A stretch of DNA of 64,000 nt from Andalucia godoyi And28 (taxonomy: Eukaryota; Protista; Jakobida). The notes beneath the pieces are model-generated. The model was not told the DNA's origin and ran no database searches. It saw nothing but the letters and a program-made list of their open reading frames with translations. Position numbers and translations under genes: made by a program. Positions 7,650 through 64,000 of the stretch are shown one piece after another. Every line of letters begins with the position of its first letter. Position 1 is the first letter of the stretch. The stretch is taken from NCBI GenBank assembly GCA_009859145.1, contig VRVR01000021.1:257507-321506 (forward strand). The letters are read 5' to 3'.

Positions 7650-7817
7650 ATGTTATTAATTTTTTTATAAATCGATTACTAAACAATTAGAACAAAAAAA
7701 ATAGAGGTGGCGCCACCTGCGAGCTTTTTGCAAGCTCTTTGACCTGTGAAGTTGATTGATAATTGCGCAATGCTTTTTGTTCTGCGGGAAAAGCCCTACG
7801 CAGACGGATGTTCGATA

Positions 7818-7935
7818 GGTACGGCCATACTAGAGTGAAAATACCGCATCCCGTCCGATTTGCGAAGTCAAGTGCTCTCAGGCTGGAGTAGTACTGAGGT
7901 GGGTGACCACTCGGGAATTCCCAGTGCTGTACTTT
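7818..7935 (+). rRNA. 5S rRNA
   Basis: About 118 nt: GGTACGGCCATAC...CATCCCGTCCGAT...GAAGTCAAG...TAGTACTGAGGTGGGTGACCACTCGGGAAT...GTGCTGTAC. Helix I (GTACGGC/GCTGTAC) pairs, and a T5 Pol III terminator follows at 7933-7937. Confidence 0.96.
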
Positions 7936-8067
7936 TTGCGACTTTTTTGCTCTCTCTCTTTAATCATTATCTTTTTTATATTTTGATGTTTTGAATTTTA
8001 TTTTCTGGTTTTTCCCTCCGTTTCACCAAAAAATGAAAGGAAGAGGGGGGTTTTATAAAAAAATTTC

Positions 8068-8141
8068 TGGACGAGAGGGGAATCGAACCCCTGACCTCTC
8101 GCATGCCATGCGAGCGCTGCTACCAGCTGAGCTACACGCCC
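8068..8141 (-). tRNA. tRNA-Ala(GGC)
   Basis: Reverse complement GGGCGTGTAGCTCAGCTGGTAGCAGCGCTCGCATGGCATGCGAGAGGTCAGGGGTTCGATTCCCCTCTCGTCCA folds as a cloverleaf. Anticodon stem CTCGC/GCGAG, loop AT-GGC-AT, G3:U70 and A73 Ala determinants, T7 terminator downstream. Confidence 0.93.
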
Positions 8142-8409
8142 AAGATTCGAAAACTTGCGACCAGCTTGCCTTGAGGCTGGACTGGCTGTGCCTAAATAAA
8201 TCGGACAACATCTTTGATTGGAAATTGGCATGTGATTTCCCCCGACCTTTCCGTTTCAAGAAGTCTTGAATCGATCAAGGATTCGCTGCAAAGAACGTTC
8301 TTTCATTCGAACAACACTGGATATTTTTTCTTTTTCTTAAATTCGTTGTTAGGTAGGTTTCATCATACTGCGCCAATTCCGCCGGTTGTTTACAGATCGT
8401 CAATTTTGG

Positions 8410-10847: not shown

Positions 10848-10920
10848 GGGCGTGTAGCTCAGTTGGTAGAGTACGTCACTTGCATTGACGGGGTCTAGGG
10901 TTCGATTCCCTACTCGTCCA
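10848..10920 (+). tRNA. tRNA-Ala(TGC)
   Basis: GGGCGTGTAGCTCAGTTGGTAGAGTACGTCACTTGCATTGACGGGGTCTAGGGTTCGATTCCCTACTCGTCCA. Stem CGTCA/TGACG, loop CT-TGC-AT, G3:U70, long T-run terminator at 10926-10938. Confidence 0.95.
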
Positions 10921-11803
10921 CTTAATTTTTTTTTTTTTGCTTCTTTCCAGTCCAAAACGATTTTCCGAGGAACTCCGAGGAACGTTGCACTGATTAATCA
11001 GTCGTGCTTCTCGTGCGTTGTGTTTGGCACACATTGAGATGCGTCTGGTGTTTTCATGTCCGTAAAACCAGTACAGTTACGGGATCAATTAAAGTAAAAG
11101 TTTCTTGTTCAGCACGAAACGATGTTTGCCAATCCCACATCCCCACCGCTCTTGAAGGGTTTTCAGCTGGACTCGTTCGCTTCATCAAGCACATCCCTCC
11201 TCCCAACGAAACATACAACCACCGAACGCTCTTTCTGAGAGTGCTGCAGATGACAAGAGGCGGAGTGTATCCACGGGGGCCTAGCTGTGTCTGAGACCGT
11301 TCTCGATCGTGTCCCTGCTTTGTCGCTGACTCTTTTTTTTCCGAACACGTTCGAATCCACCGTTTGTAAAAATAAAAATAAAAAAAACCCCAATTGCCAT
11401 TGCTGGACATGCTTCCCCGATTTGGCAAATTGCACAGGGCGCATCTCCCGACGTTCAACGAGAGGCGTAGACGGCGTTCTGAGGAGCTAATTCTACCTGC
11501 TGTCTGAATTCTGCAATTAGATATGTCACAGGCGTCGTGTGTTTTTGACTGACAGACAACCGGGCTTTTTGGAAGGAAGAATTAGAGAAGTATCCGGTGA
11601 ATCTAAAACATGGACTCGCGGATGCCGCGTTGGATTTTAATGTTAAAACCGTTTCCTCTATGATTCGCGGCTGTTTCCGGCTGCAGTCGCAAGGTTGATT
11701 ACTTGACGACCATGCATCCATACTGTGAAAATCTACTGCTGTAAGCTTGTTCTTGGATATGTCACCGTAAACATCGACCTAACAAACTATGCCGATTCCT
11801 CAC

Positions 11804-12245
11804 AACATGAATCATTATTGATCATCGACTAAGCTGTCACCGAAGACAGATCCAAGCCACATGCTGTTTTGCTTGTATTTGCAGGGAGGGGGGAGGGTGG
11901 GCGAACACCAACTCTCCAATGTAGATTGCTCTGCATCAGAGGGGTCACTTCTTCTTCATCTTGCTCTCCACCTCCGACGAGAGGGAATCAACGGGTTTCT
12001 TGGTTCTCGCTATCTTCGGACCATGGCCGGTTTGAGTTTGGTGGGAAGGTCCCCCTTTGGAGCCATGAGATGTTTTGTCTCTGATGAGGAGGTGCTGCTT
12101 GAGGGTTCGATAGTAAGGAACAAGCAAACAGAAAGAAATAGAAAGAAAGAACCAAAAGCGAAAGAATGCAGAAATTCCTAGACTTGACTACGGTAAGAGA
12201 ATCGTATTTTGTTTGGGGTGTTCAACGTTGATAGACAAAAGCTGT
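11804..12245 (+). repeat. Dispersed repeat family, full copy A
   Basis: Colinear, high similarity to 60350-60830 over three blocks: aacatgaatcattattgatcatcg...gaagacagatccaagccacatg; caccaactc...gagggttcgat; gacttgactacggtaag. An A-rich spacer separates blocks 2 and 3. Confidence 0.92.
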
Positions 12246-21762: not shown

Positions 21763-22938
21763 TCACAATTTTCTTGCCTTCTTCACTGCCTTTGCGTCGA
21801 CAACGGCAGGGGCCGTTCTCTTCTTTGGTCGCGCTACTTCTGTCTCCGCTATTTCTGCATCTACAGTCTTTGAAGGAGCAACCTTTGCAGGCGTGGTGGT
21901 CGTCGGCTGTGCCTGTGACGGCGACTTCGAGAAGTCAGCAGACTTCTTTGACAAGCGCTCGGCTTTCGGTGAACTGGCTGACAGAGATTTGGCTTCTGGT
22001 TTAGGAGACGAAGCCGGGGCAGTCGCATTCTTCTTTTGTTCGGCCTTTTTTGCACCAATCTTTGTGGACTGAACGAGATTAGCCTTCTCTGCATTTGCTG
22101 ATTTCAGTTCTTGCTCGGCATCCGCTTTGGTGTTCTTTTTTGCACCACCAGGCTTTTCCGCCTTCTCCGTCTTTTCCGCAGTGACTCCGTTGGATTTCTT
22201 TTCCTGCTGCACGCTGTCACTCTGCGCTGGGACCTTGAATACATAGTTCCAAACTGGGAGTGCAACGCTCTCCTTTGTTTTGATGTTCAGAGCCTGGATC
22301 GGCTGACCCACTGCTTGGGAGACCGGCTGGACGACAGCGAAGAAGTTGTCGAGCAGATGTTCAGTGTCCATCGTAGTGGACCCAAAGCAAACAGAAACGC
22401 ACGTTCCTCTTCCATATGACAACAACGTGCTGTGAAGCGTTTTTTCGATTTCTCCTCGAATGTGCTTTGTATCCACCTTGATGGCGACTGGCTGCTTCTT
22501 TGATTCATAGAACTTGCTTCCCAGAACTCGCGGTAGCGCAGTGATTACTCGCTCATCAGCAAGGAATACATCAAATGCACCAACCAGTGCCCTTCGTTCT
22601 TCAAATGTCTTGAACTTTGTTTTCAGCTTTGCAACGCCCACGACCTTCTGGACCACTTCTGACAGCCCAAACTTTTGTACGAGTTGCTTGGTTTCTTTGT
22701 GCGGATCCTTTGCAATAAGCATAACCTGTGTCTTTCCTTCCGAGAAGATGGGGTTTGGGATTGGGATTCGCAGCGGATTCACCCGCGCACGAGCAGGCAC
22801 CGTTCGGAGTGTGAACTGCATGTACAACGCCTCTCCAGCCTCGCCTTGCAGCAGATCCTTCGATGCGTTCGCAGCAATATGTTTCTTCAATGCACTTACA
22901 GCCTTGCGAACCTGGTCGCGATCCGGAGTTGGTGTCAT
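21763..22938 (-). CDS. RSL1D1: Ribosomal L1 domain-containing protein (RSL1D1/Cic1/Utp30 family)
   Basis: QVRKAVSALKKH...RIPIPNPIF..VMLIAKDP...KLKTKFKTFEERRALVGAFDVFLADERVITALPRVLGSKFYESKKQPVAI...ESVALPVW, followed by a Lys/Ala-rich tail. First true ATG is at 22938. Confidence 0.9.
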   Translation of the reverse strand: MTPTPDRDQVRKAVSALKKHIAANASKDLLQGEAGEALYMQFTLRTVPARARVNPLRIPIPNPIFSEGKTQVMLIAKDPHKETKQLVQKFGLSEVVQKVVGVAKLKTKFKTFEERRALVGAFDVFLADERVITALPRVLGSKFYESKKQPVAIKVDTKHIRGEIEKTLHSTLLSYGRGTCVSVCFGSTTMDTEHLLDNFFAVVQPVSQAVGQPIQALNIKTKESVALPVWNYVFKVPAQSDSVQQEKKSNGVTAEKTEKAEKPGGAKKNTKADAEQELKSANAEKANLVQSTKIGAKKAEQKKNATAPASSPKPEAKSLSASSPKAERLSKKSADFSKSPSQAQPTTTTPAKVAPSKTVDAEIAETEVARPKKRTAPAVVDAKAVKKARKL

Positions 22939-23233
22939 TCCTCCCAAAAATTAAAAAATCCTTCCACAAATCCCCCGGGACAGAACCACAACCGAGCAAA
23001 AACGCAAAGATGAAAACACAAAGATGAATTGAACAAAATCATCGAAAGAGAAGCGATGAAAACATCAAAATGCAACAACTTTTTACTTGGCTTTTCAAAA
23101 ACCGCACACCGAAGCGCGAAAGATTCGAGGATGCATCAATTGATGCAATAAAAAGCCCCTCTCCTTGTTCGCAATGCGTGGACTCACGATTCGCAGACGG
23201 GCGCGGAGAGAATAGGAGATAGATGAGAGATGA

Positions 23234-23891: not shown

Positions 23892-24455
23892 CTATGAGCT
23901 GCTGGAGTCCGAGTGGAAGACAGCGACTCCTCTTCGCAGCGCGACGTCCTGTGGAGTTTCGAGGAGTTTGAGAGCGTCGAAAGCGGCTTTGATGACGTTT
24001 AGCTTGTTTGTGGATCCATGGACCTTTGCCGAGATGTCTTGGATACCGGCAACCTGAGCAATTGCCGTGATGTTCCGATTTGCACGAATTCCCGAGTTGA
24101 CACGCGCAGGACGCAGCTCGACAATTGTTTCGCAGTGCTCGGCCTTGACTGCATGTGTGATGGTCTGTCGTGCCGTCGCTTGAGAAACGTCTGCAGGCTG
24201 CTCAAGGAAGATCCGTGTTCTTCTCGACTGTTCAAGAGCCTTCTGCACAGCACTCGGAACATCAAGAGCCTTTCCATATCCATACCCAACACACCCAGAA
24301 AGATTTCCAGAAACTACAAGTGCAGTGAATCCAAGAACTTTGCCGCCTTTCGTCACTTTCGTCACTCGCCGAACATCAAGAACTCGCACTTCCTCCGGCG
24401 CTCGGCCTCCTGCACGCGGAAACGCAGACGAAAACATCCGACGCAACAACAACAT
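23892..24455 (-). CDS. MRPS5: Mitochondrial ribosomal protein uS5m
   Basis: Bacterial-type S5 motifs (VRRVTKVTKGGK..FTALVVSGN..GYGYGKA; ELRPA..GIRA; AGIQDISAKVHGSTNKLNVIKA) preceded by an Arg/Ser-rich presequence, MLLLRRMFSSAFPRA. Confidence 0.9.
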   Translation of the reverse strand: MLLLRRMFSSAFPRAGGRAPEEVRVLDVRRVTKVTKGGKVLGFTALVVSGNLSGCVGYGYGKALDVPSAVQKALEQSRRTRIFLEQPADVSQATARQTITHAVKAEHCETIVELRPARVNSGIRANRNITAIAQVAGIQDISAKVHGSTNKLNVIKAAFDALKLLETPQDVALRRGVAVFHSDSSSS

Positions 24456-58286: not shown

Positions 58287-58590
58287 ATGGTTCAGGAATA
58301 TGCGTGTGTGTTGGGAGGCGGTTTGTTCTTTCCTTGTTTTTAATAGCGGATCAAAGCTAGCTGTGTAGTGCTGTACAATTATCGTCATATAATACAATAG
58401 GTGAACAATTCAAATGAAAAATGGGTAACCATAAAGCCAACCCCCCCCCCCCCCCCCCCAAAAAAAAAAAGAAAGAAAGAAAAAACATAATAAAAAATAA
58501 GAGGGATGATGTCGTCGGTGTCGGAGAGGAAAGGGAGGAAGGAAGGGAGCAAGACAACCCTGGAAACAAAATCGTTCACCAGGCCTGGTC

Positions 58591-60036
58591 TTATTCGACG
58601 ACCAAGCTGGAGCCTGTCCACGCGATCTTCCGAAAGCCGTTCAGCGAGAATACATTCATTTCGGAGAACATGGGGGCACAGTGCATCGTGCGGAGCCAAG
58701 TGCAGAACATGCCAAGAAGAACTGCTGGGATTTCACCTTTGAGAACCATGTGGAGCTTGTTGTCGGATTTCAACAGCGGACAAAATGACACTGGGGAGTT
58801 TGTGGAATGGAGAAACAGGTCCGATGAGCGGACGCACAACGCTGGGATTGTTGGAGTGACCGCGGCGTTCATTGACAGCGGAGTCAAGGGTTTTGATGCA
58901 GGTGTCGATGCTGAGACCAGCAGCTGCACGATCTTTGGGAGGGTCTCGAGTACCGAAGAAGACCCTCGGACGACGAAGGACACCTGTTGTCCGTCCTTTG
59001 GACTGATCGAAACCGAGTTCGACATTCTCTCGAGATGAAAATCACTGGGAAGTGAATTGGCGACGGAAACGGGACAGCAAGACCAAACGAGAACCAGGTC
59101 ATGTCCGACAAGATGTTTCTGAACCCAAGCTGGAGACGCCATGCCGTCAGCAAACGTCTCGGACGCACAGCCTCCTTCCAGATCGAGCGGCGCGAACGAA
59201 TCAATCAGCGATTGTGAAAAGACTCCAACCGAGCCCATCGTAGCATGCTCCCAGACTGCGAAGAAGACGGACGCTTCGGAAGAATGCTCACTGTCCACGA
59301 CTCCAAACAAATCACGCACGTTCTCGACAATGCATTTGCTGGCTGTTTCGACTTTTTGAATGTCCAGGTCATCGCAAACAAAGTGAGAGAGCAGGCGCGC
59401 AGCATCTCGTTTGCTGGATGGAAGTGCACAGATTGCCGATCCAAGGCGCTTGCCGATACTCGATTCCAAACCGGAGACGATCGCCTGCAGATCGGGCAGT
59501 TCCAAATTTGCACTTGGAATGGTGAACCGCACCTCGTTTTTGCATGTTTTTACGCAAAACGGCGGAGGCAAATCCGAGGGGCCGGCGACCGAAGACTGCG
59601 ATAGTGTCTGGGAACCGCTGGTCGTATTCTGACTCTGCGAAGCCTGCAAGACGTATCCACGGGAAGTCCGCGACGCGAAGTTTGTTGGGGTGGTTCTGGA
59701 CTTCTTTGGCCGAGGACCGGAGAGCCCAGCCTCGTCTTTCGAGTGCCTTGGCGAAGCAGGGAAGTCCTGCGACATGCAGTCATCGATTGTCGAACACCGC
59801 GAATTGCTGGCTGGAGGAATGTTCTCATTCCACGGATTCATCGATGCCGAGTTTGTAACTGGAGTGGACAACGACGACGACGAAGAAGAAGAAAAGGCTA
59901 TGGTCGATGTACTTAGAGATAGGGTCGAGGGAACTCTTCGAAACGGCTCAAACGACGGAGTCCGAGCAGGTCGCCTGATTGCAGGAGTGAGCAGATCCGA
60001 CAGCGAGGAAAACGAACGTCCTAGATCAGCAGCCAT
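58591..60036 (-). CDS. About 481-aa protein, possibly DONSON-like
   Basis: Start placed at MAADLG because the upstream part of the track ORF is a pyrimidine tract/15-bp repeat ending in an AG. A disordered N-terminus is followed by segments (LPPPFCVKT..VRFT; PALCVRSSDLF...HMVLKGEIPAVLL..FC) loosely like DONSON. The identity call is weak. Confidence 0.4.
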   Translation of the reverse strand: MAADLGRSFSSLSDLLTPAIRRPARTPSFEPFRRVPSTLSLSTSTIAFSSSSSSSLSTPVTNSASMNPWNENIPPASNSRCSTIDDCMSQDFPASPRHSKDEAGLSGPRPKKSRTTPTNFASRTSRGYVLQASQSQNTTSGSQTLSQSSVAGPSDLPPPFCVKTCKNEVRFTIPSANLELPDLQAIVSGLESSIGKRLGSAICALPSSKRDAARLLSHFVCDDLDIQKVETASKCIVENVRDLFGVVDSEHSSEASVFFAVWEHATMGSVGVFSQSLIDSFAPLDLEGGCASETFADGMASPAWVQKHLVGHDLVLVWSCCPVSVANSLPSDFHLERMSNSVSISPKDGQQVSFVVRGSSSVLETLPKIVQLLVSASTPASKPLTPLSMNAAVTPTIPALCVRSSDLFLHSTNSPVSFCPLLKSDNKLHMVLKGEIPAVLLGMFCTWLRTMHCAPMFSEMNVFSLNGFRKIAWTGSSLVVE

Positions 60037-60115
60037 GTTGATGAAGTCACTGAATGAATGATCGACTTGTAATAACAATAAATGAAACCAAAAACCAAAA
60101 ACCAAAAATAAAAGA

Positions 60116-60175
60116 AATGAAACAGACAGAAATGAAACAGACAGGAATGAAACAGACAGGAATGAAACAGAAAGA
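60116..60175 (+). repeat. 15-bp tandem repeat (AATGAAACAGACAGR) x4
   Basis: Read directly from the sequence; it explains the SVSFL repeats in track ORF 58591..60402. Confidence 0.9.
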
Positions 60176-60349
60176 AGGGAAAAGACGAGCATTGAAATTC
60201 GCAGACTTGAGTTCCCGCGCAGAATGGTTATGGCGGCAGTTTTGAGGATCAGAACAAACGATGGGCGCCTGAGCGGGGCATTTTCAGCAAACCAATTTGC
60301 GGCGATATTTTCCATTTTTGTGCTTTCTTTCTGAACTCCGCTCGCCAAA

Positions 60350-60830
60350 AACATGAAATCATTATTGATCATCGGAGAAGCTGCAACCGAAGACAGATCC
60401 AAGCCACATGTGTTTTGTTTTTTTATTTATTTATTTGAGGGGCCGAGCACCAACTCTTCAATGCAAATTGCTCTGCATCAATGGGGGTCATCGCTTCTTC
60501 TTACTCTCCGCCTCCAACGAGACAGAATCAACGGGTTCCTTGGTTCTCGGTATCTTCGGACCATGGCCGGTTTGAGTTTGGTGGGAAGGTCCCCCTTTGG
60601 AGCCATGAGATGTTTTCACCTTTGTCTTTGACGAGGTGTTGCTTGAGGGTTCGATTAAAAAATGTAAAAAAAACAAAAAAAAAAAAGAAAATAATAGAGA
60701 GAAGAAGAAAAGTGAAGAGCGAAAGAGATACCGGACTTGACTACGGTAAGAAAAATCGCAACCCAAAGGGTTAGATCAGCAAAACTTTCCGGTATGATGC
60801 TGTTTGTTGGATGTTCATCGACAAAACAGT
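60350..60830 (+). repeat. Dispersed repeat family, full copy B
   Basis: Colinear with 11804-12245. Shares a near-identical core, tcttcggaccatggccggtttgagtttggtgggaaggtccccctttggagccatgagatgtttt, and gacttgactacggtaag. Confidence 0.92.
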
Positions 60831-60936
60831 CCACCGTTAGCCATTTTATCATCCGCTATTTCTTCTCGCAGCAGCTTTCTTCTTGTCCTTCTCTCTTTCA
60901 CTTACCTTCTCTGTGACATGGCGCTGTGTCGATATC

Positions 60937-63900
60937 ATGTACAGTGGTGGTAGTGGTGGTGGTGGCGGGAGTTCGTACGGCGGATATGCTGCGAGTCCAA
61001 GCCAGACGCACAAGTTGCATGTGTACCGCACTTCGTTTGGGACGTCTGCGCAGCTGCAAATCCCGCTGCGGGACAAGTTTCTTCGCCCACACTCATCGTC
61101 GTATATAACAGGATTTTGCATTGTTTCGCACTCGCCTGCGTTTCATGTCTCGGACTATGCACTGGCTCCAATTTGCCATCCTGAGGCCCTCGAGTATCCG
61201 TGCAGTGTTACGGTGGATCCATGCCTGGTTGAAGGCGTGCTGCCGCAAACGACATTTAGACGGTGTCCATGGATTCGGGCGCATGTTGATGATGCAGAGC
61301 TGGAATCCGTGGTGTTGACGCGAGACGAGGTTCAAGTGCTGGTCGATTTTCACAATGCGTGGTTTGTCAAGCTGTTGAGCTGTTCAACTGGTGCTCACCG
61401 ACTCGTGTCCCAGCACCCGTTGTTCATGAGTGTCGAGTCCGCAAGCCCGTTTATCGGGAAGCCAGTTGTGTGCCCTCTTGTAGACGGCAAGCTGAATGTT
61501 CCTGCAATGGCTGTTTTGCTGGGAAAAGGAACGGAAGTCTCCATCAGCAGAGTGGCCCGCGCATTCCATCCTTCGCAGACCGTCCAGTCTCTCAGTTCAC
61601 AAGATGCATTTTCCGCCAATGACGTCGATGAGCTGGCATCGATGCACAGAATTCTCTCCCAGCAAGAATGGACTGCGTTTGAGTCTGTAGTCCGGAGTTG
61701 CGTGCTGGTTCCCGGCCGCGACACTCGGAGCGTTTACATTTGCAAGCGGTTCCCGGACCGCGAGCACGTTTCTCTATCCATTGGTACCACTGTTGTTACT
61801 CCCACTCCCACGTTGTCTTCTACGTCTATGTCTACGTCCTCCATCACGAAGACGCCCGTCTCGACTCTCAATGCGACACAAAGTCGGGAGTTCCATGACC
61901 ACATGGATCGCGTGTACGTCATACCGTTTCCAGTGGAGTTGTTCAAGTTCTCACGGGCACTAGCGAGCATTCTTTCCAGATGCACCAGAAGCATCCATCA
62001 TTTTGAAGCCATTCAGAAGCAGGCGCTGTCTCCTTTCAGGATCCGCTTCCGGGATTCCAATCGGTACCTTCTTCGAAGAGCGTTCACCCACAAATCCTTT
62101 ATATCCCCGTCGGATCGGCTCCTGAGTGCCGATCCGATGCCTGGCCATCAGTTGGAAAGAGATTATGAGCAGCTGGAGTTTCTGGGCGATGCTCTTCTGC
62201 AGCTGGTGCTCTCGGATCGCGTGGCAAGACTGTATCAGTACCTGACGTCTGTGAAGCGCGAGCGCATTTCGGATTCATTCTTTTATCGCTGGTTCAAGTT
62301 TTATGCTCGAAATTCAACCATTGAAAAGGCCATGATCACCAAGTTCGGCTGGAACCCGTCGACGCTGCTGACGATCCGAGGAAATCACGACGACAGCCGA
62401 GCCGTAATTTCGGATTGTTTCGAGGCGTTTCTAGCGGCCGTTTTTCTTGATTCTGGCCTTGCAATGGATCGGGTTGTGTACATTGTGGATAACGCACTTT
62501 TGTTTTCGATGGATTGTGACATTGTGACCGACGACCGTTTCCGCCTCGATTCGACGGTGTGGCGATCTGCACTGGCCGACAATCGACAGAGTTCCATGAA
62601 TGTGTCTATTGCTTCTTCAAAGATGCACAGCTATTTAGGGAGTTCGTCTGTTACTGTGGACTCTCTTCGCCCTTTCCTTGGAGAGACTCTAATGAACAGA
62701 CTTTCCCCAACCGATGCAGAATCTCTGCGTCCGCTGCTGGTGGAGTGTCTGGCGTTTAACTTGCCTTGCTACCCGCACGAGAAGCGAACAAATGACTGTC
62801 TGAATGATGTGCGCCGAGCTGTTCTCGATCCCGGGGATCCTGTGGTCCCTGCATCCTTCCTGCGATTCCGACTTGTTGGACAGTCGCTCTTGCGCCTCTC
62901 GACTGTGCTGTGGCTATTTCTTGGGGCCTTCCGCGGACCGATACAGGCATTTGCGAATTCCGGCGGAAGCTGGGCGGACGACGAATCGCAGGTGTCGGAG
63001 AAGACATATATTGCGAATCGCATGTATTTTTACTCTCACGAGCTTCGCGCAAAGCTGAATGCGGCACTGACGGAGCATCGGATGTGGGATCATGTCACCA
63101 GAACAGAGGATTCATACGCGCTGTTCGGAAAAGAGTGGAAGCAAAAGTTTCCTGCGGCTTCCTCGCGAAACTTATCACACCTCAGTGGTTCGCAGTACGA
63201 AGCGTTGTATTTCTGCATCCTGGCGGTTTGGGGCGGATTTTTTATGCACTATGATGGGGTATCCGACGTTGCAAATCCAGTTCTCTCGTTCTCTTCGGCG
63301 ACGAAGCAGCCAGCATGTTCTGTCTGCAACATGCCCCATTCCAATTTGTTCGCCTGTTTCATGTGCAAGTTCTTCTTCAGTCAGCGCCAGGGTTGGGCCA
63401 TGGCCCTCGATTACAGCGAGTCTGCGTCAAAGCATGCCACCCACATTCTCACCCAGCGATTCCTTCCCCTGGGAACCATTCGTGGCACCACCACGAATCC
63501 CGTGTCCCGTCCGAGTTCCTATGGGTTTCGCCAGAACTCCGAGCATTCTTCTTTCAAAAGCCAGGTTTGGATTGACGGTCATGAAATCGCATCTGCAGAG
63601 GATGTGCATCCACTGCAGTGTGAGCGTCTGGCAGTCCAGCGAGGCTATGCAATCTTGACATTTCTGCGAAGGCTCGCGTATCGAGAATATGGTCGTTCCT
63701 CCACGCGAGAGAGCACGGGGCTCTCCGCGAATCCGCATGACGTCCATGACGTTCCGTTGTTCGATTCTGAAGAGGGCGGATCATCGGAGGATGAGGGGGC
63801 CGAGGATGCGTATGCTCGCGTGATGAAACATGGCCAGTTTGAGTTTGATGAAACGAGAGAAGAGGGCTTTTATGCAAACACTGCTGTGGTCGGACCAATT

Positions 63901-64000
63901 TGGAAGATCTGGAAGCAGCATCGAGACGTTTCGAATGCGCAAGCACGTTTTCGATTTTCTCGTCGCCAAACTCGTCGTGTGATTGAAAATCTTGAAACAG
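60937..64000 (+). CDS. Dicer/Drosha-like ribonuclease III, 3'-truncated by the window (at least 1021 aa); absent from the supplied ORF track
   Basis: Manual translation of frame 1 shows no stop from 60841 to 64000. RNase III motifs LLRRAFTHKS (62068), YEQLEFLGDALL (62164) and ISDCFEAFLAAVFLDSG (62407). Second degenerate domain at 62730-63240, CxxC...CxxC at 63316, dsRBD-like segment at about 63550-63660. Confidence 0.9.
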   Translation, partial: MYSGGSGGGGGSSYGGYAASPSQTHKLHVYRTSFGTSAQLQIPLRDKFLRPHSSSYITGFCIVSHSPAFHVSDYALAPICHPEALEYPCSVTVDPCLVEGVLPQTTFRRCPWIRAHVDDAELESVVLTRDEVQVLVDFHNAWFVKLLSCSTGAHRLVSQHPLFMSVESASPFIGKPVVCPLVDGKLNVPAMAVLLGKGTEVSISRVARAFHPSQTVQSLSSQDAFSANDVDELASMHRILSQQEWTAFESVVRSCVLVPGRDTRSVYICKRFPDREHVSLSIGTTVVTPTPTLSSTSMSTSSITKTPVSTLNATQSREFHDHMDRVYVIPFPVELFKFSRALASILSRCTRSIHHFEAIQKQALSPFRIRFRDSNRYLLRRAFTHKSFISPSDRLLSADPMPGHQLERDYEQLEFLGDALLQLVLSDRVARLYQYLTSVKRERISDSFFYRWFKFYARNSTIEKAMITKFGWNPSTLLTIRGNHDDSRAVISDCFEAFLAAVFLDSGLAMDRVVYIVDNALLFSMDCDIVTDDRFRLDSTVWRSALADNRQSSMNVSIASSKMHSYLGSSSVTVDSLRPFLGETLMNRLSPTDAESLRPLLVECLAFNLPCYPHEKRTNDCLNDVRRAVLDPGDPVVPASFLRFRLVGQSLLRLSTVLWLFLGAFRGPIQAFANSGGSWADDESQVSEKTYIANRMYFYSHELRAKLNAALTEHRMWDHVTRTEDSYALFGKEWKQKFPAASSRNLSHLSGSQYEALYFCILAVWGGFFMHYDGVSDVANPVLSFSSATKQPACSVCNMPHSNLFACFMCKFFFSQRQGWAMALDYSESASKHATHILTQRFLPLGTIRGTTTNPVSRPSSYGFRQNSEHSSFKSQVWIDGHEIASAEDVHPLQCERLAVQRGYAILTFLRRLAYREYGRSSTRESTGLSANPHDVHDVPLFDSEEGGSSEDEGAEDAYARVMKHGQFEFDETREEGFYANTAVVGPIWKIWKQHRDVSNAQARFRFSRRQTRRVIENLET

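Follow-up and report, generated by a model that had tools for sequence, protein, structure and literature searches.

The analyzed window, a stretch of 64,000 nt from contig VRVR01000021.1 of the jakobid Andalucia godoyi And28, ends within a long protein-coding gene. Frame +1 is free of stop codons from 60841 to 64000, and its first ATG is located at 60937. The part of the coding sequence that lies in the window (60937..64000, + strand) encodes aa 1-1021 of a complete product of 1122 aa, designated P0001, and about 306 nt beyond position 64000 encode the final 101 aa. In the preliminary description, the gene had been called hidden and its completion had been left for later. The frame is indeed open from 60841 to the end of the window, but the gene is missing from the ORF list of the window only because the ORF runs past the window end, and the full product is now available. 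The final 101 aa contain no RNase III motif, so that the further intact RNase III domain that had been considered possible downstream of the window is absent. An exact look-up of P0001, aimed at lengthening the contig, returned no record, and the precomputed Pfam record of the protein names just PF00636 and PF14622. P0001 can be aligned from end to end with a metagenomic protein, P0002 (BLASTP, E 5e-75; phmmer, E 3.7e-58). The gene is real and complete.

Other features of the window include pyrimidine-rich tracts upstream of ATGs, long ORFs that lack introns, and a gene strand that alternates every few kilobases. A uS5 gene in the window encodes a mitoribosomal protein of the bacterial type, and an Rfam scan revealed 5S rRNA and tRNAs, but nothing else. 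The pyrimidine-rich tracts and the intron-less ORFs had suggested an identity with trypanosomatid DCL1/DCL2, which was tentatively set aside in view of the frequent strand switches and the lack of any trypanosomatid-like homologue among the phmmer matches.

P0002 (JGI 3300042934, SRR35185192) is the sole full-length homologue of P0001, with about 30% identity and a collinear organization throughout. The family thus has two members, and all statements on conservation made here refer to these two sequences. Besides P0002, the best phmmer neighbours with a full architecture were proteins of the PAZ-IIIa-IIIb-dsRBD type (P0003, P0016, P0022, and others), and the remaining neighbours were single-domain RNase III proteins. 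The whole-protein hhalign comparison with the PAZ-IIIa-IIIb-dsRBD proteins was collinear across aa 124-971 (probability 98.8%, E 1e-16). Word-index searches with the full protein, with a two-sequence profile, and with a trimmed profile recovered the query itself and one fungal Dicer (E 0.007), and missed P0002. Low-complexity words probably swamped the first two of these searches; the profile without low complexity did no better, and P0002 may be unreachable via the word index. A scan of metagenome loci for the conserved RNase III motifs yielded 65 loci, each of which matched a single RNase III domain only (aa ~325-564), and no new family members.

The first nuclease domain, domain a (RNase IIIa, aa 377-520, 62065..62496, + strand), was recognized by Pfam with scores above the curated cut-offs (PF14622, 40.5 bits; PF00636, 35.1 bits), by matches to the PDB entries 1o0w and 1jfz, by hhalign (probability 99.6-99.7%), and in the alignment-guided AF2 model, in which it has a pLDDT of 80-93. 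The Aquifex and Thermotoga enzymes, for which bacterial RNase III structures have been solved, can be aligned with it. The motif EQLEFLGD (aa 411-418, 62167-62190) carries E411, E414, and D418, and the motif SDCFE (aa 492-496, 62410-62424) carries D493 and E496. With the Aquifex residues E40, D44, D107, and E110 as the reference for RNase III membership, the superfamily signature, ExLEFLGD plus the four acids, is present in full: E414, D418, D493, and E496 are found in P0001 and are invariant in P0002, exactly as had been claimed for this domain. Domain a is a bona fide canonical RNase III domain and is predicted to be catalytically competent.

The situation is different in the following region, domain b (degenerate RNase IIIb-like domain, aa 593-775, 62713..63261, + strand), which was delineated by MAFFT, hhalign with shuffles, AF2, and Foldseek. 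It consists of an N-terminal motif, LLVECLAFNLPCYP, a signature helix, FLRFRLVGQSLL, a second helix that contains SQYEAL, a 7-residue insertion, and then AVWGGFFM. In the signature helix (aa 641-652, 62857-62892), R645 stands in place of the Glu and Q649 in place of the Asp, and in SQYEAL (aa 752-757, 63190-63207) S752 replaces the second Asp, while E755 is retained. These are the substitutions that had been noted before, and arithmetic as well as the alignment of P0001 with P0002 confirmed the motif coordinates given at that time for both domains. Because no acidic residue at all occurs in aa 636-665, the choice of alignment register has no bearing on this loss, and in any register domain b of P0001 retains at most one of the four acids. 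The corresponding residues of P0002 are R, E, A, and E. The dead pattern is thus common to P0001 and its sole ortholog, and the loss is therefore ancient and maintained. Most likely, as far as can be judged from the two sequences, domain b is a conserved inactive copy, a pseudo-IIIb.

Upstream of domain a, a connector-helix-like segment (aa 325-376, 61909..62064, + strand; 38% identity to P0002) was identified by phmmer, alignment, and AF2. It contains VIPFPVELFKFS, a degenerate counterpart of the Dicer-like L[IV]PE(L/F)C motif; the phmmer match to P0003 begins before the nuclease domain, at aa 339, and AF2 renders the connector as one long helix (model residues 9-43). Further upstream, the N-terminal region (aa 25-324, 61009..61908, + strand) has neither an assigned fold nor a Pfam match, is 23.5% identical to P0002, and occupies the place of the platform/PAZ module in minimal Dicers. 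The N-terminus of P0001 is of low complexity. A platform/PAZ module had been suggested by eye from motifs of protist Dicer-like proteins, but neither hhalign nor Pfam confirmed it: PAZ was absent in Pfam searches at E<=1 and at E<=10, and an hhalign comparison with the N-terminal parts of protist Dicer-likes that bear PAZ recovered the connector helix only. The absence of PAZ from P0001 is not proven by these searches, because PAZ escapes sequence detection in some Dicers (PMC10328071). Pfam matches to a helicase or to Dicer_dimer (DUF283) were also absent, and merely about 320 aa precede the connector helix, so that P0001 is not a canonical Dicer as defined by a RIG-I-like helicase plus DUF283.

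Two further elements follow domain b. The first is a Cys/His cluster, C794-x2-C797-x3-H801-x8-C810 (63316..63366, + strand), which precedes the dsRBD-like region. P0001 and P0002 share all four of its ligands, and the sequence pattern (CCHC) makes a zinc knuckle possible; a weak zf-UBP match (aa 794-834) remained below the threshold, with 17.1 bits versus a cut-off of 22.7. The second element is a dsRBD-like region with a predicted beta-beta-beta-alpha topology (aa 862-919, 63520..63693, + strand). In hhalign, it coincided with the dsRBD present in the reference alignments (E 0.005-0.009), and in the AF2 model it comprises strands (model residues 538-565) and a helix (568-595), with a pLDDT of 58-77. 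The Pfam search for Ribonuclease_3, PAZ, and dsrm that had been proposed earlier thus recovered RNase III in domain a, but neither PAZ nor, even at E<=10, dsrm.

A single-sequence AlphaFold prediction of aa 322-828 was uninformative (pLDDT 35). In contrast to it stands the alignment-guided AF2 model, with a pTM of 0.69 and a pLDDT of 74-89 for the two core helices of domain b. The other rows of the alignment from which this model was built are canonical tandem enzymes, and therefore the fold of domain b is partly imposed and the test is partly circular. With this model, the top PDB matches in Foldseek were Drosha and Dicer/DCL4, and they spanned both nuclease domains. The best match was Drosha 5b16_A (E 7e-7, 585 columns), further Drosha entries were 6lxd and 6v5b, and the TM-scores to Drosha and Dicer were modest (0.36-0.44).

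Bacterial RNase III, Rnt1, and budding-yeast Dcr1, the class 1 enzymes, homodimerise via their single nuclease domain. P0001 might behave likewise, in which case it would homodimerise via domain a and make ordinary double-strand cuts, and the second region, RNase III-derived or not, would serve as an accessory domain for RNA binding or as a scaffold, located away from the dimer face of IIIa. Such an enzyme would fit with a domain a that is by itself a complete catalytic domain, with homodimeric bacterial enzymes as the best solved sequence matches, with a dsRBD-like fold downstream, as in class 1, and with a domain b too degenerate for Pfam. However, P0001 probably has a second RNase III-like domain, and all characterised chains with two RNase III domains use an intramolecular dimer, according to established knowledge and PMC10328071. 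In addition, the AF2 model matches Drosha and Dicer over both domains. Furthermore, domain b ranks second in conservation among the regions compared between P0001 and P0002, with 34% identity, compared to 23-25% in the flanks, and its identity is highest in the core helices, reaching 46% on the second helix. By this comparison of two sequences, domain b is under constraint, most of all in its core helices. Altogether, a class 1-like mode of action appears unlikely.

The designation of the second region as an RNase III-like domain had been based on visual motifs, and it would be wrong if the region were a lineage-specific helical domain unrelated to RNase III. The likeness of xRLxG and xxEAL to RNase III motifs would then be coincidental, and P0001 would possess just one RNase III domain plus long extensions. 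The general searches were indeed blind to domain b: it was matched neither by Pfam, even at E<=10, nor in a profile search across the whole set of PDB sequences, a BLASTP comparison of domains a and b gave no hit, and the hhalign scores of domain b segments used as single sequences were inside the range of real-protein decoys. The partial circularity of the AF2 evidence also fits such a domain. Against it, the targeted profile test exceeded chance. The two-ortholog profile aligned to the RNase IIIb alignment with a score of 23.5 (hhalign, E 0.006) and was placed exactly on the signature helix; the signature segment alone reached an E of 9.5e-4, and hhalign did not pick up the RNase III motif expected at the N-terminal end of domain b. 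The score was reached by none of the 60 column shuffles and by one of the 202 block shuffles (empirical p ~0.005), whereas other or reversed regions of the same alignment scored only 9-16. The signature helix and the second catalytic helix of domain b coincided with the RNase IIIb motifs found in protist Dicer-like proteins and with the bacterial motifs. Two separate motifs match homologous positions in the correct order in two independent reference alignments. Unsupervised MAFFT yielded the same correspondence, with A606 and G648 in columns that are invariant across 17 sequences, and the motif spacing and the place between IIIa and the dsRBD-like fold fit a tandem architecture. Taken together, these results argue that domain b probably has the fold and identity of an RNase III domain, and a coincidental likeness is improbable. 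A non-enzymatic relic or pseudogene product, for which only the degeneration of the second domain and the low complexity of the N-terminus would speak, is extremely unlikely in view of 1122 uninterrupted codons, a homologue with about 30% identity that is collinear throughout, and the invariance of all catalytic residues of domain a.

The tandem arrangement of an intact and a degenerate nuclease domain invites comparison with several known systems. The structural archetype of the minimal, helicase-less protist Dicer-likes is Giardia Dicer, with the order PAZ, RNase IIIa, RNase IIIb, dsRBD. Proteins of this type, here represented by P0003, P0016, P0022, P0025, and P0035, are among the best neighbours of domain a plus connector, and, besides P0002, no other neighbours have a full architecture that is comparable. 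P0001 shares with them the order of the modules, i.e., connector helix, IIIa, IIIb-like domain, and dsRBD-like region, and its profile is collinear with theirs over the full length. Unlike them, it has no detectable PAZ, its domain b lacks three of the four catalytic acids and is invisible to Pfam, it carries an inserted CCHC motif and a long tail at the C-terminus, and the identity outside of domain a is negligible. Structurally, the partly alignment-guided model is matched best by Drosha, over the two nuclease domains as well as the dsRBD. Drosha, too, has a core of tandem RNase III domains and no end ruler that depends on PAZ. However, the identity to Drosha is 14-16% and the TM-score is about 0.4, and Drosha is a metazoan, DGCR8-dependent enzyme with two active sites.

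Proteins that combine competent and dead RNase III domains, or that have kept dead domains only, are also known. In the trypanosome KREN/KREPB proteins, a single RNase III domain is surrounded by accessory motifs of the zinc-finger and RNA-binding kinds. In P0001, Pfam detected none of these accessory motifs and no zinc finger N-terminal to domain a, and no sequence relationship was seen outside of the RNase III domain. According to PMC9508840, the editing endonucleases of trypanosomes require a pair of RNase III proteins, just one of which is catalytic, and KREN1-3/KREPB form an RNase III dimer with one competent domain. The resemblance claimed for P0001 is a functional analogy only, and, unlike in P0001, the live and the dead domain of KREN/KREPB reside on separate polypeptides in a mitochondrial complex. 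An intramolecular dimer that pairs a live with a dead domain is found in the human DICER1 RNase IIIb hotspot mutants, in which cleavage of the 5p arm is abolished, as described in PMC6695490 and PMC12632780. Those mutations are somatic and pathogenic and affect an otherwise canonical Dicer, whereas the loss in P0001 is natural, ancient, and conserved in P0002. Non-catalytic RNase III-like proteins are exemplified by the mitoribosomal mL44 and by maize RNC1, which has two dead domains. Both have kept degenerate RNase III domains as RNA-binding or scaffold modules and have no live domain, whereas domain a of P0001 is intact. The Pfam model of mL44 (PF22935) misses P0001, yet it matches canonical Dicer-likes.

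P0001 is thus best described as a putative, highly divergent, helicase-less tandem RNase III of the Dicer/Drosha type, composed of a connector helix, an intact IIIa, a degenerate IIIb, a CCHC motif, and a dsRBD-like fold. The name Dicer/Drosha-like, which had been proposed at the outset, agrees with this best reading, a live IIIa next to a dead IIIb-like domain, but it rests on the collinearity with the minimal protist Dicer-likes and on the alignment-guided model, and PAZ, helicase, and dsrm matches do not contribute to it. We consider it fairly probable that P0001 is a minimal enzyme of this kind with a live IIIa, a pseudo-IIIb, and one active site.

The defining trait of Dicer and Drosha is a pair of active sites whose joint action gives a staggered double-strand cut. 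In P0001, the two nuclease domains are not both catalytic as a cut of one strand by each would require, with R645, Q649, and S752 in domain b and only E755 kept. Domain b would most likely pair with IIIa in the same chain, as in Dicer and Drosha. At least three of the four metal-binding carboxylates are gone from it (Glu to Arg645, Asp to Gln649, Asp to Ser752), and therefore the processing centre would have one active site instead of two. Of Dicer's RNase III domains, each cuts one strand (PMC10328071). By analogy, P0001 is predicted to nick one strand of a duplex or hairpin, namely the strand that faces IIIa, and a full double-strand cut would take a second protein or a second binding event. 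A partner requirement or a non-canonical small-RNA pathway, as envisaged in the preliminary description, may follow from the same analogy. More tentatively, P0001 could be a Dicer-like, strand-specific nickase of dsRNA or hairpins with a single active site, kept in an almost unsampled eukaryotic lineage and acting in a pathway for small RNAs or RNA processing whose second cut falls to another nuclease or does not occur at all, while the conserved Arg645 would hold the uncut strand; we regard this extended scenario as possible rather than likely.

To our knowledge, no natural tandem enzyme with a single live site has been characterised, save for the mutants seen in disease and for the trypanosome editing nucleases, which consist of two proteins. 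If the proposed reading is true, P0001 would be a natural experiment on the action of a one-sided Dicer core, as well as a compact candidate for a strand-specific dsRNA nickase. Pfam detects one nuclease domain and nothing else in P0001, which illustrates that very divergent Dicer-like genes can escape annotation, and such missed genes matter when protists are surveyed for whether RNAi is present or absent.

Translation of frame +1 revealed no stop codon from 60841 to the window end, with the first ATG at 60937. As the preliminary description had pointed out, the ORF track missed this gene, because the listing leaves out ORFs that extend past the end of the source sequence. The complete product, the putatively Dicer/Drosha-like protein P0001 (1122 aa), was recovered by homology search. 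Only 101 residues lie beyond 64000. An RNase III motif is absent from them, and PF00636 and PF14622 are the only entries in the precomputed Pfam record of P0001; the possibility, named in the description, of another intact RNase III domain downstream therefore does not apply. The four strings that the description had quoted were located at the positions it gave (aa 411-418, 492-496, 641-652, and 752-757), and its sequence observation is confirmed.

The single Pfam RNase III domain of P0001 spans aa 377-509, with scores above the curated cut-offs for both PF14622 (40.5 bits) and PF00636 (35.1 bits). In the PDB sequence search, this domain a aligns to the Thermotoga and Aquifex RNases III. Its proposed full set of catalytic acids is indeed present: E411, E414, D418, D493, and E496 are all found in P0001 and are invariant in the pair alignment with its ortholog P0002. 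Judged by these residues, domain a looks catalytically competent.

For the second region (domain b, aa ~593-775), unbiased and targeted tests gave different answers. The unbiased tests yielded no Pfam match, even at E<=10, and nothing relevant when the profile was compared with the whole set of PDB sequences; domains a and b did not match each other by BLASTP. In contrast, a targeted comparison of domain b alone with an RNase IIIb-only alignment placed the match precisely at the signature helix, with a score of 23.5 (E 0.006). This score was reached by none of 60 column shuffles and by one of 202 block-of-6 shuffles, and other and reversed regions of the P0001/P0002 pair alignment scored 9-16. 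The segment aa 633-690 matches the signature motif of the IIIb reference (E 9.5e-4) and of the bacterial reference (E 0.056), and in both references aa 743-790 matches the second catalytic helix (E 0.04-0.07). The segment tests did not detect the N-terminal RNase III motif, and the two segments as single sequences were unexceptional compared with 116 real-protein decoys. A two-sequence profile was collinear with nine Dicer-like proteins over aa 124-971 (probability 98.8%, E 1e-16), a result dominated by domain a. Unsupervised MAFFT alignment pairs LLVECLAF with LLxQAxTH, FLRFRLVGQSLLRLSTVLWLF of domain b with YERLEFLGDCVLKFVVGTWLF, and SQYEAL with SDVFEA; A606 and G648 are invariant columns across the 17 aligned sequences. 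Thus, the unbiased tests do not identify domain b as RNase III, whereas the targeted tests indicate that it probably is; we consider it likely to be a degenerate RNase III domain.

The four catalytic positions of domain b are occupied by R645, Q649, S752, and E755 in P0001, in agreement with the losses originally read from the sequence (Glu to Arg, Asp to Gln, Asp to Ser, last Glu kept), and by R, E, A, and E in P0002. That P0001 retains at most one of the four carboxylates is independent of the alignment register, because there is no acidic residue in aa 636-665 and E755 is the only one in aa 745-772. Both proteins carry a 7-residue insertion between the EAL of the second helix and the hGxhhh motif. 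The identity between P0001 and P0002 is 43% in domain a, 38% in the connector, and 34% in domain b, compared with 23-29% in all other regions, indicating that selection maintains the dead domain.

Elsewhere in the protein, P0001 and P0002 share every residue of a Cys/His cluster (C794-x2-C797-x3-H801-x8-C810), which gives a sub-threshold zf-UBP match in Pfam, and sequence support for a dsRBD-like region is weak (E 0.005-0.009). PAZ, platform, DUF283, and helicase domains were not detectable in Pfam searches to E<=10 or by profile comparison of the N-terminus; some Dicers carry PAZ domains that escape sequence detection (PMC10328071).

In an exhaustive phmmer search of 1.84 billion cluster representatives, P0002 (1088 aa, E 3.7e-58) was the sole homologue over the full length; it is encoded on a JGI metagenome contig of 7 kb and in a Logan assembly and aligns end to end with about 24-30% identity. 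The remaining 38 matches cover only aa ~370-520. No further member came from three word-index searches or from a metagenome scan, so that in the data available the family consists of two proteins. The best multi-domain neighbours besides P0002 are helicase-less Dicer-like proteins (P0003, P0016, P0022, P0025, P0035, P0021, and P0015). On both contigs that carry P0002, the gene downstream of and convergent to it encodes a TPH (trichohyalin-plectin-homology) protein (L001 3891-5408 and L002 4286-5836, both minus strand), a family typical of flagellated eukaryotes. The P0002 contigs share no synteny with the window, which stops inside the Dicer-like gene. In the representative library, P0008 (594 aa) is another natural tandem RNase III, made of two RNase III-dsRBD units, in which the second nuclease domain has likewise degenerated, with ERLKFLGSS and KETCSAF replacing ERLEFLGD and ADxFEAL; thus, the pairing of a live and a dead domain would have arisen more than once.

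The window itself is that of an intron-poor eukaryote, with about 50% GC, genes on both strands, and frequent strand switches, which make a trypanosomatid origin unlikely. Identified genes encode Pex2/12, an ABC transporter, gamma-glutamyltranspeptidase, an EF-hand protein, an eEF1A-family GTPase, a G-patch protein, and pescadillo. The uS5 gene (23892-24455, minus strand), with best PDB matches to bacterial, plant-mitochondrial, and chloroplast uS5, is presumably mitoribosomal; it lies near a 394-aa L1-family (uL1) gene (21763-22947, minus strand; Pfam Ribosomal_L1 only), on the strand opposite to the neighbours. A solitary 5S rRNA gene (7817-7935, plus strand) adjoins a tRNA-Ala gene (8067-8142, minus strand) with the anticodon GGC according to ARAGORN, which is unusual in eukaryotic nuclear genomes; a second tRNA-Ala (UGC; 10848-10921, plus strand) lies 2.7 kb away. 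The 5S rRNA and tRNA-Ala genes lie on either side of the gamma-glutamyltranspeptidase gene, at positions where coding changes strand. Neither half of a single plus-strand ORF of 8193 codons (25021-49602) matches a Pfam domain, and the AT skew of its coding strand is strongly negative (about -0.2 to -0.3). Directly upstream of the Dicer-like gene are two overlapping candidate ORFs on opposite strands (58421-59038, plus; 58591-60402, minus), neither with a Pfam match. A dispersed intergenic element of ~125 nt occurs in three plus-strand copies (1577-1700, 11994-12112, and 60534-60660; ~84% column identity), one of which precedes the Dicer-like ATG by ~280 nt. No Rfam family matches the element, and its predicted consensus fold is weak (-22 kcal/mol, one compensatory pair); a small mobile element, an unknown ncRNA, and a conserved regulatory or UTR element are all conceivable.

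The AlphaFold prediction from the single sequence was uninformative (pLDDT 35). A model of aa 325-930, guided by a 17-row alignment, reached a pTM of 0.69 and a mean pLDDT of 67, with pLDDT values of 80-93 for domain a, 74-89 for the signature helix and 82-86 for the second catalytic helix of domain b, and 58-77 for a beta-beta-beta-alpha unit at aa 862-919. Its top Foldseek match in the PDB was Drosha (5b16_A, E 7e-7, 585 aligned columns, TM 0.42), followed by other Drosha entries, plant DCL4, and mammalian Dicer. The model indicates compatibility with a tandem fold, not independent proof, because the remaining alignment rows are canonical tandem enzymes. In the main rival explanation, P0001 would form a class-1-like IIIa/IIIa homodimer and domain b would be an accessory module. 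The initial interpretation has partial support: the tandem architecture of one live and one dead domain is probable from sequence and model, and the accompanying proposal of one-strand nicking is a prediction by analogy. In Dicer-type enzymes, the two RNase III domains dimerize within one molecule, with one strand cut by each (PMC10328071). Human DICER1 that has lost IIIb chemistry no longer cleaves the 5p arm (PMC6695490, PMC12632780), and trypanosome editing endonucleases need a pair of RNase III proteins of which just one is competent for catalysis (PMC9508840). By analogy, a tandem P0001 would have a pseudo-dimeric processing centre with a single active site, that of IIIa, and would cut only one strand, while the backbone of the uncut strand may be contacted by the conserved Arg that replaces the former Glu. 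P0001 and P0002 would then represent a family, of two known members, of tandem RNases III whose second domain is naturally dead.
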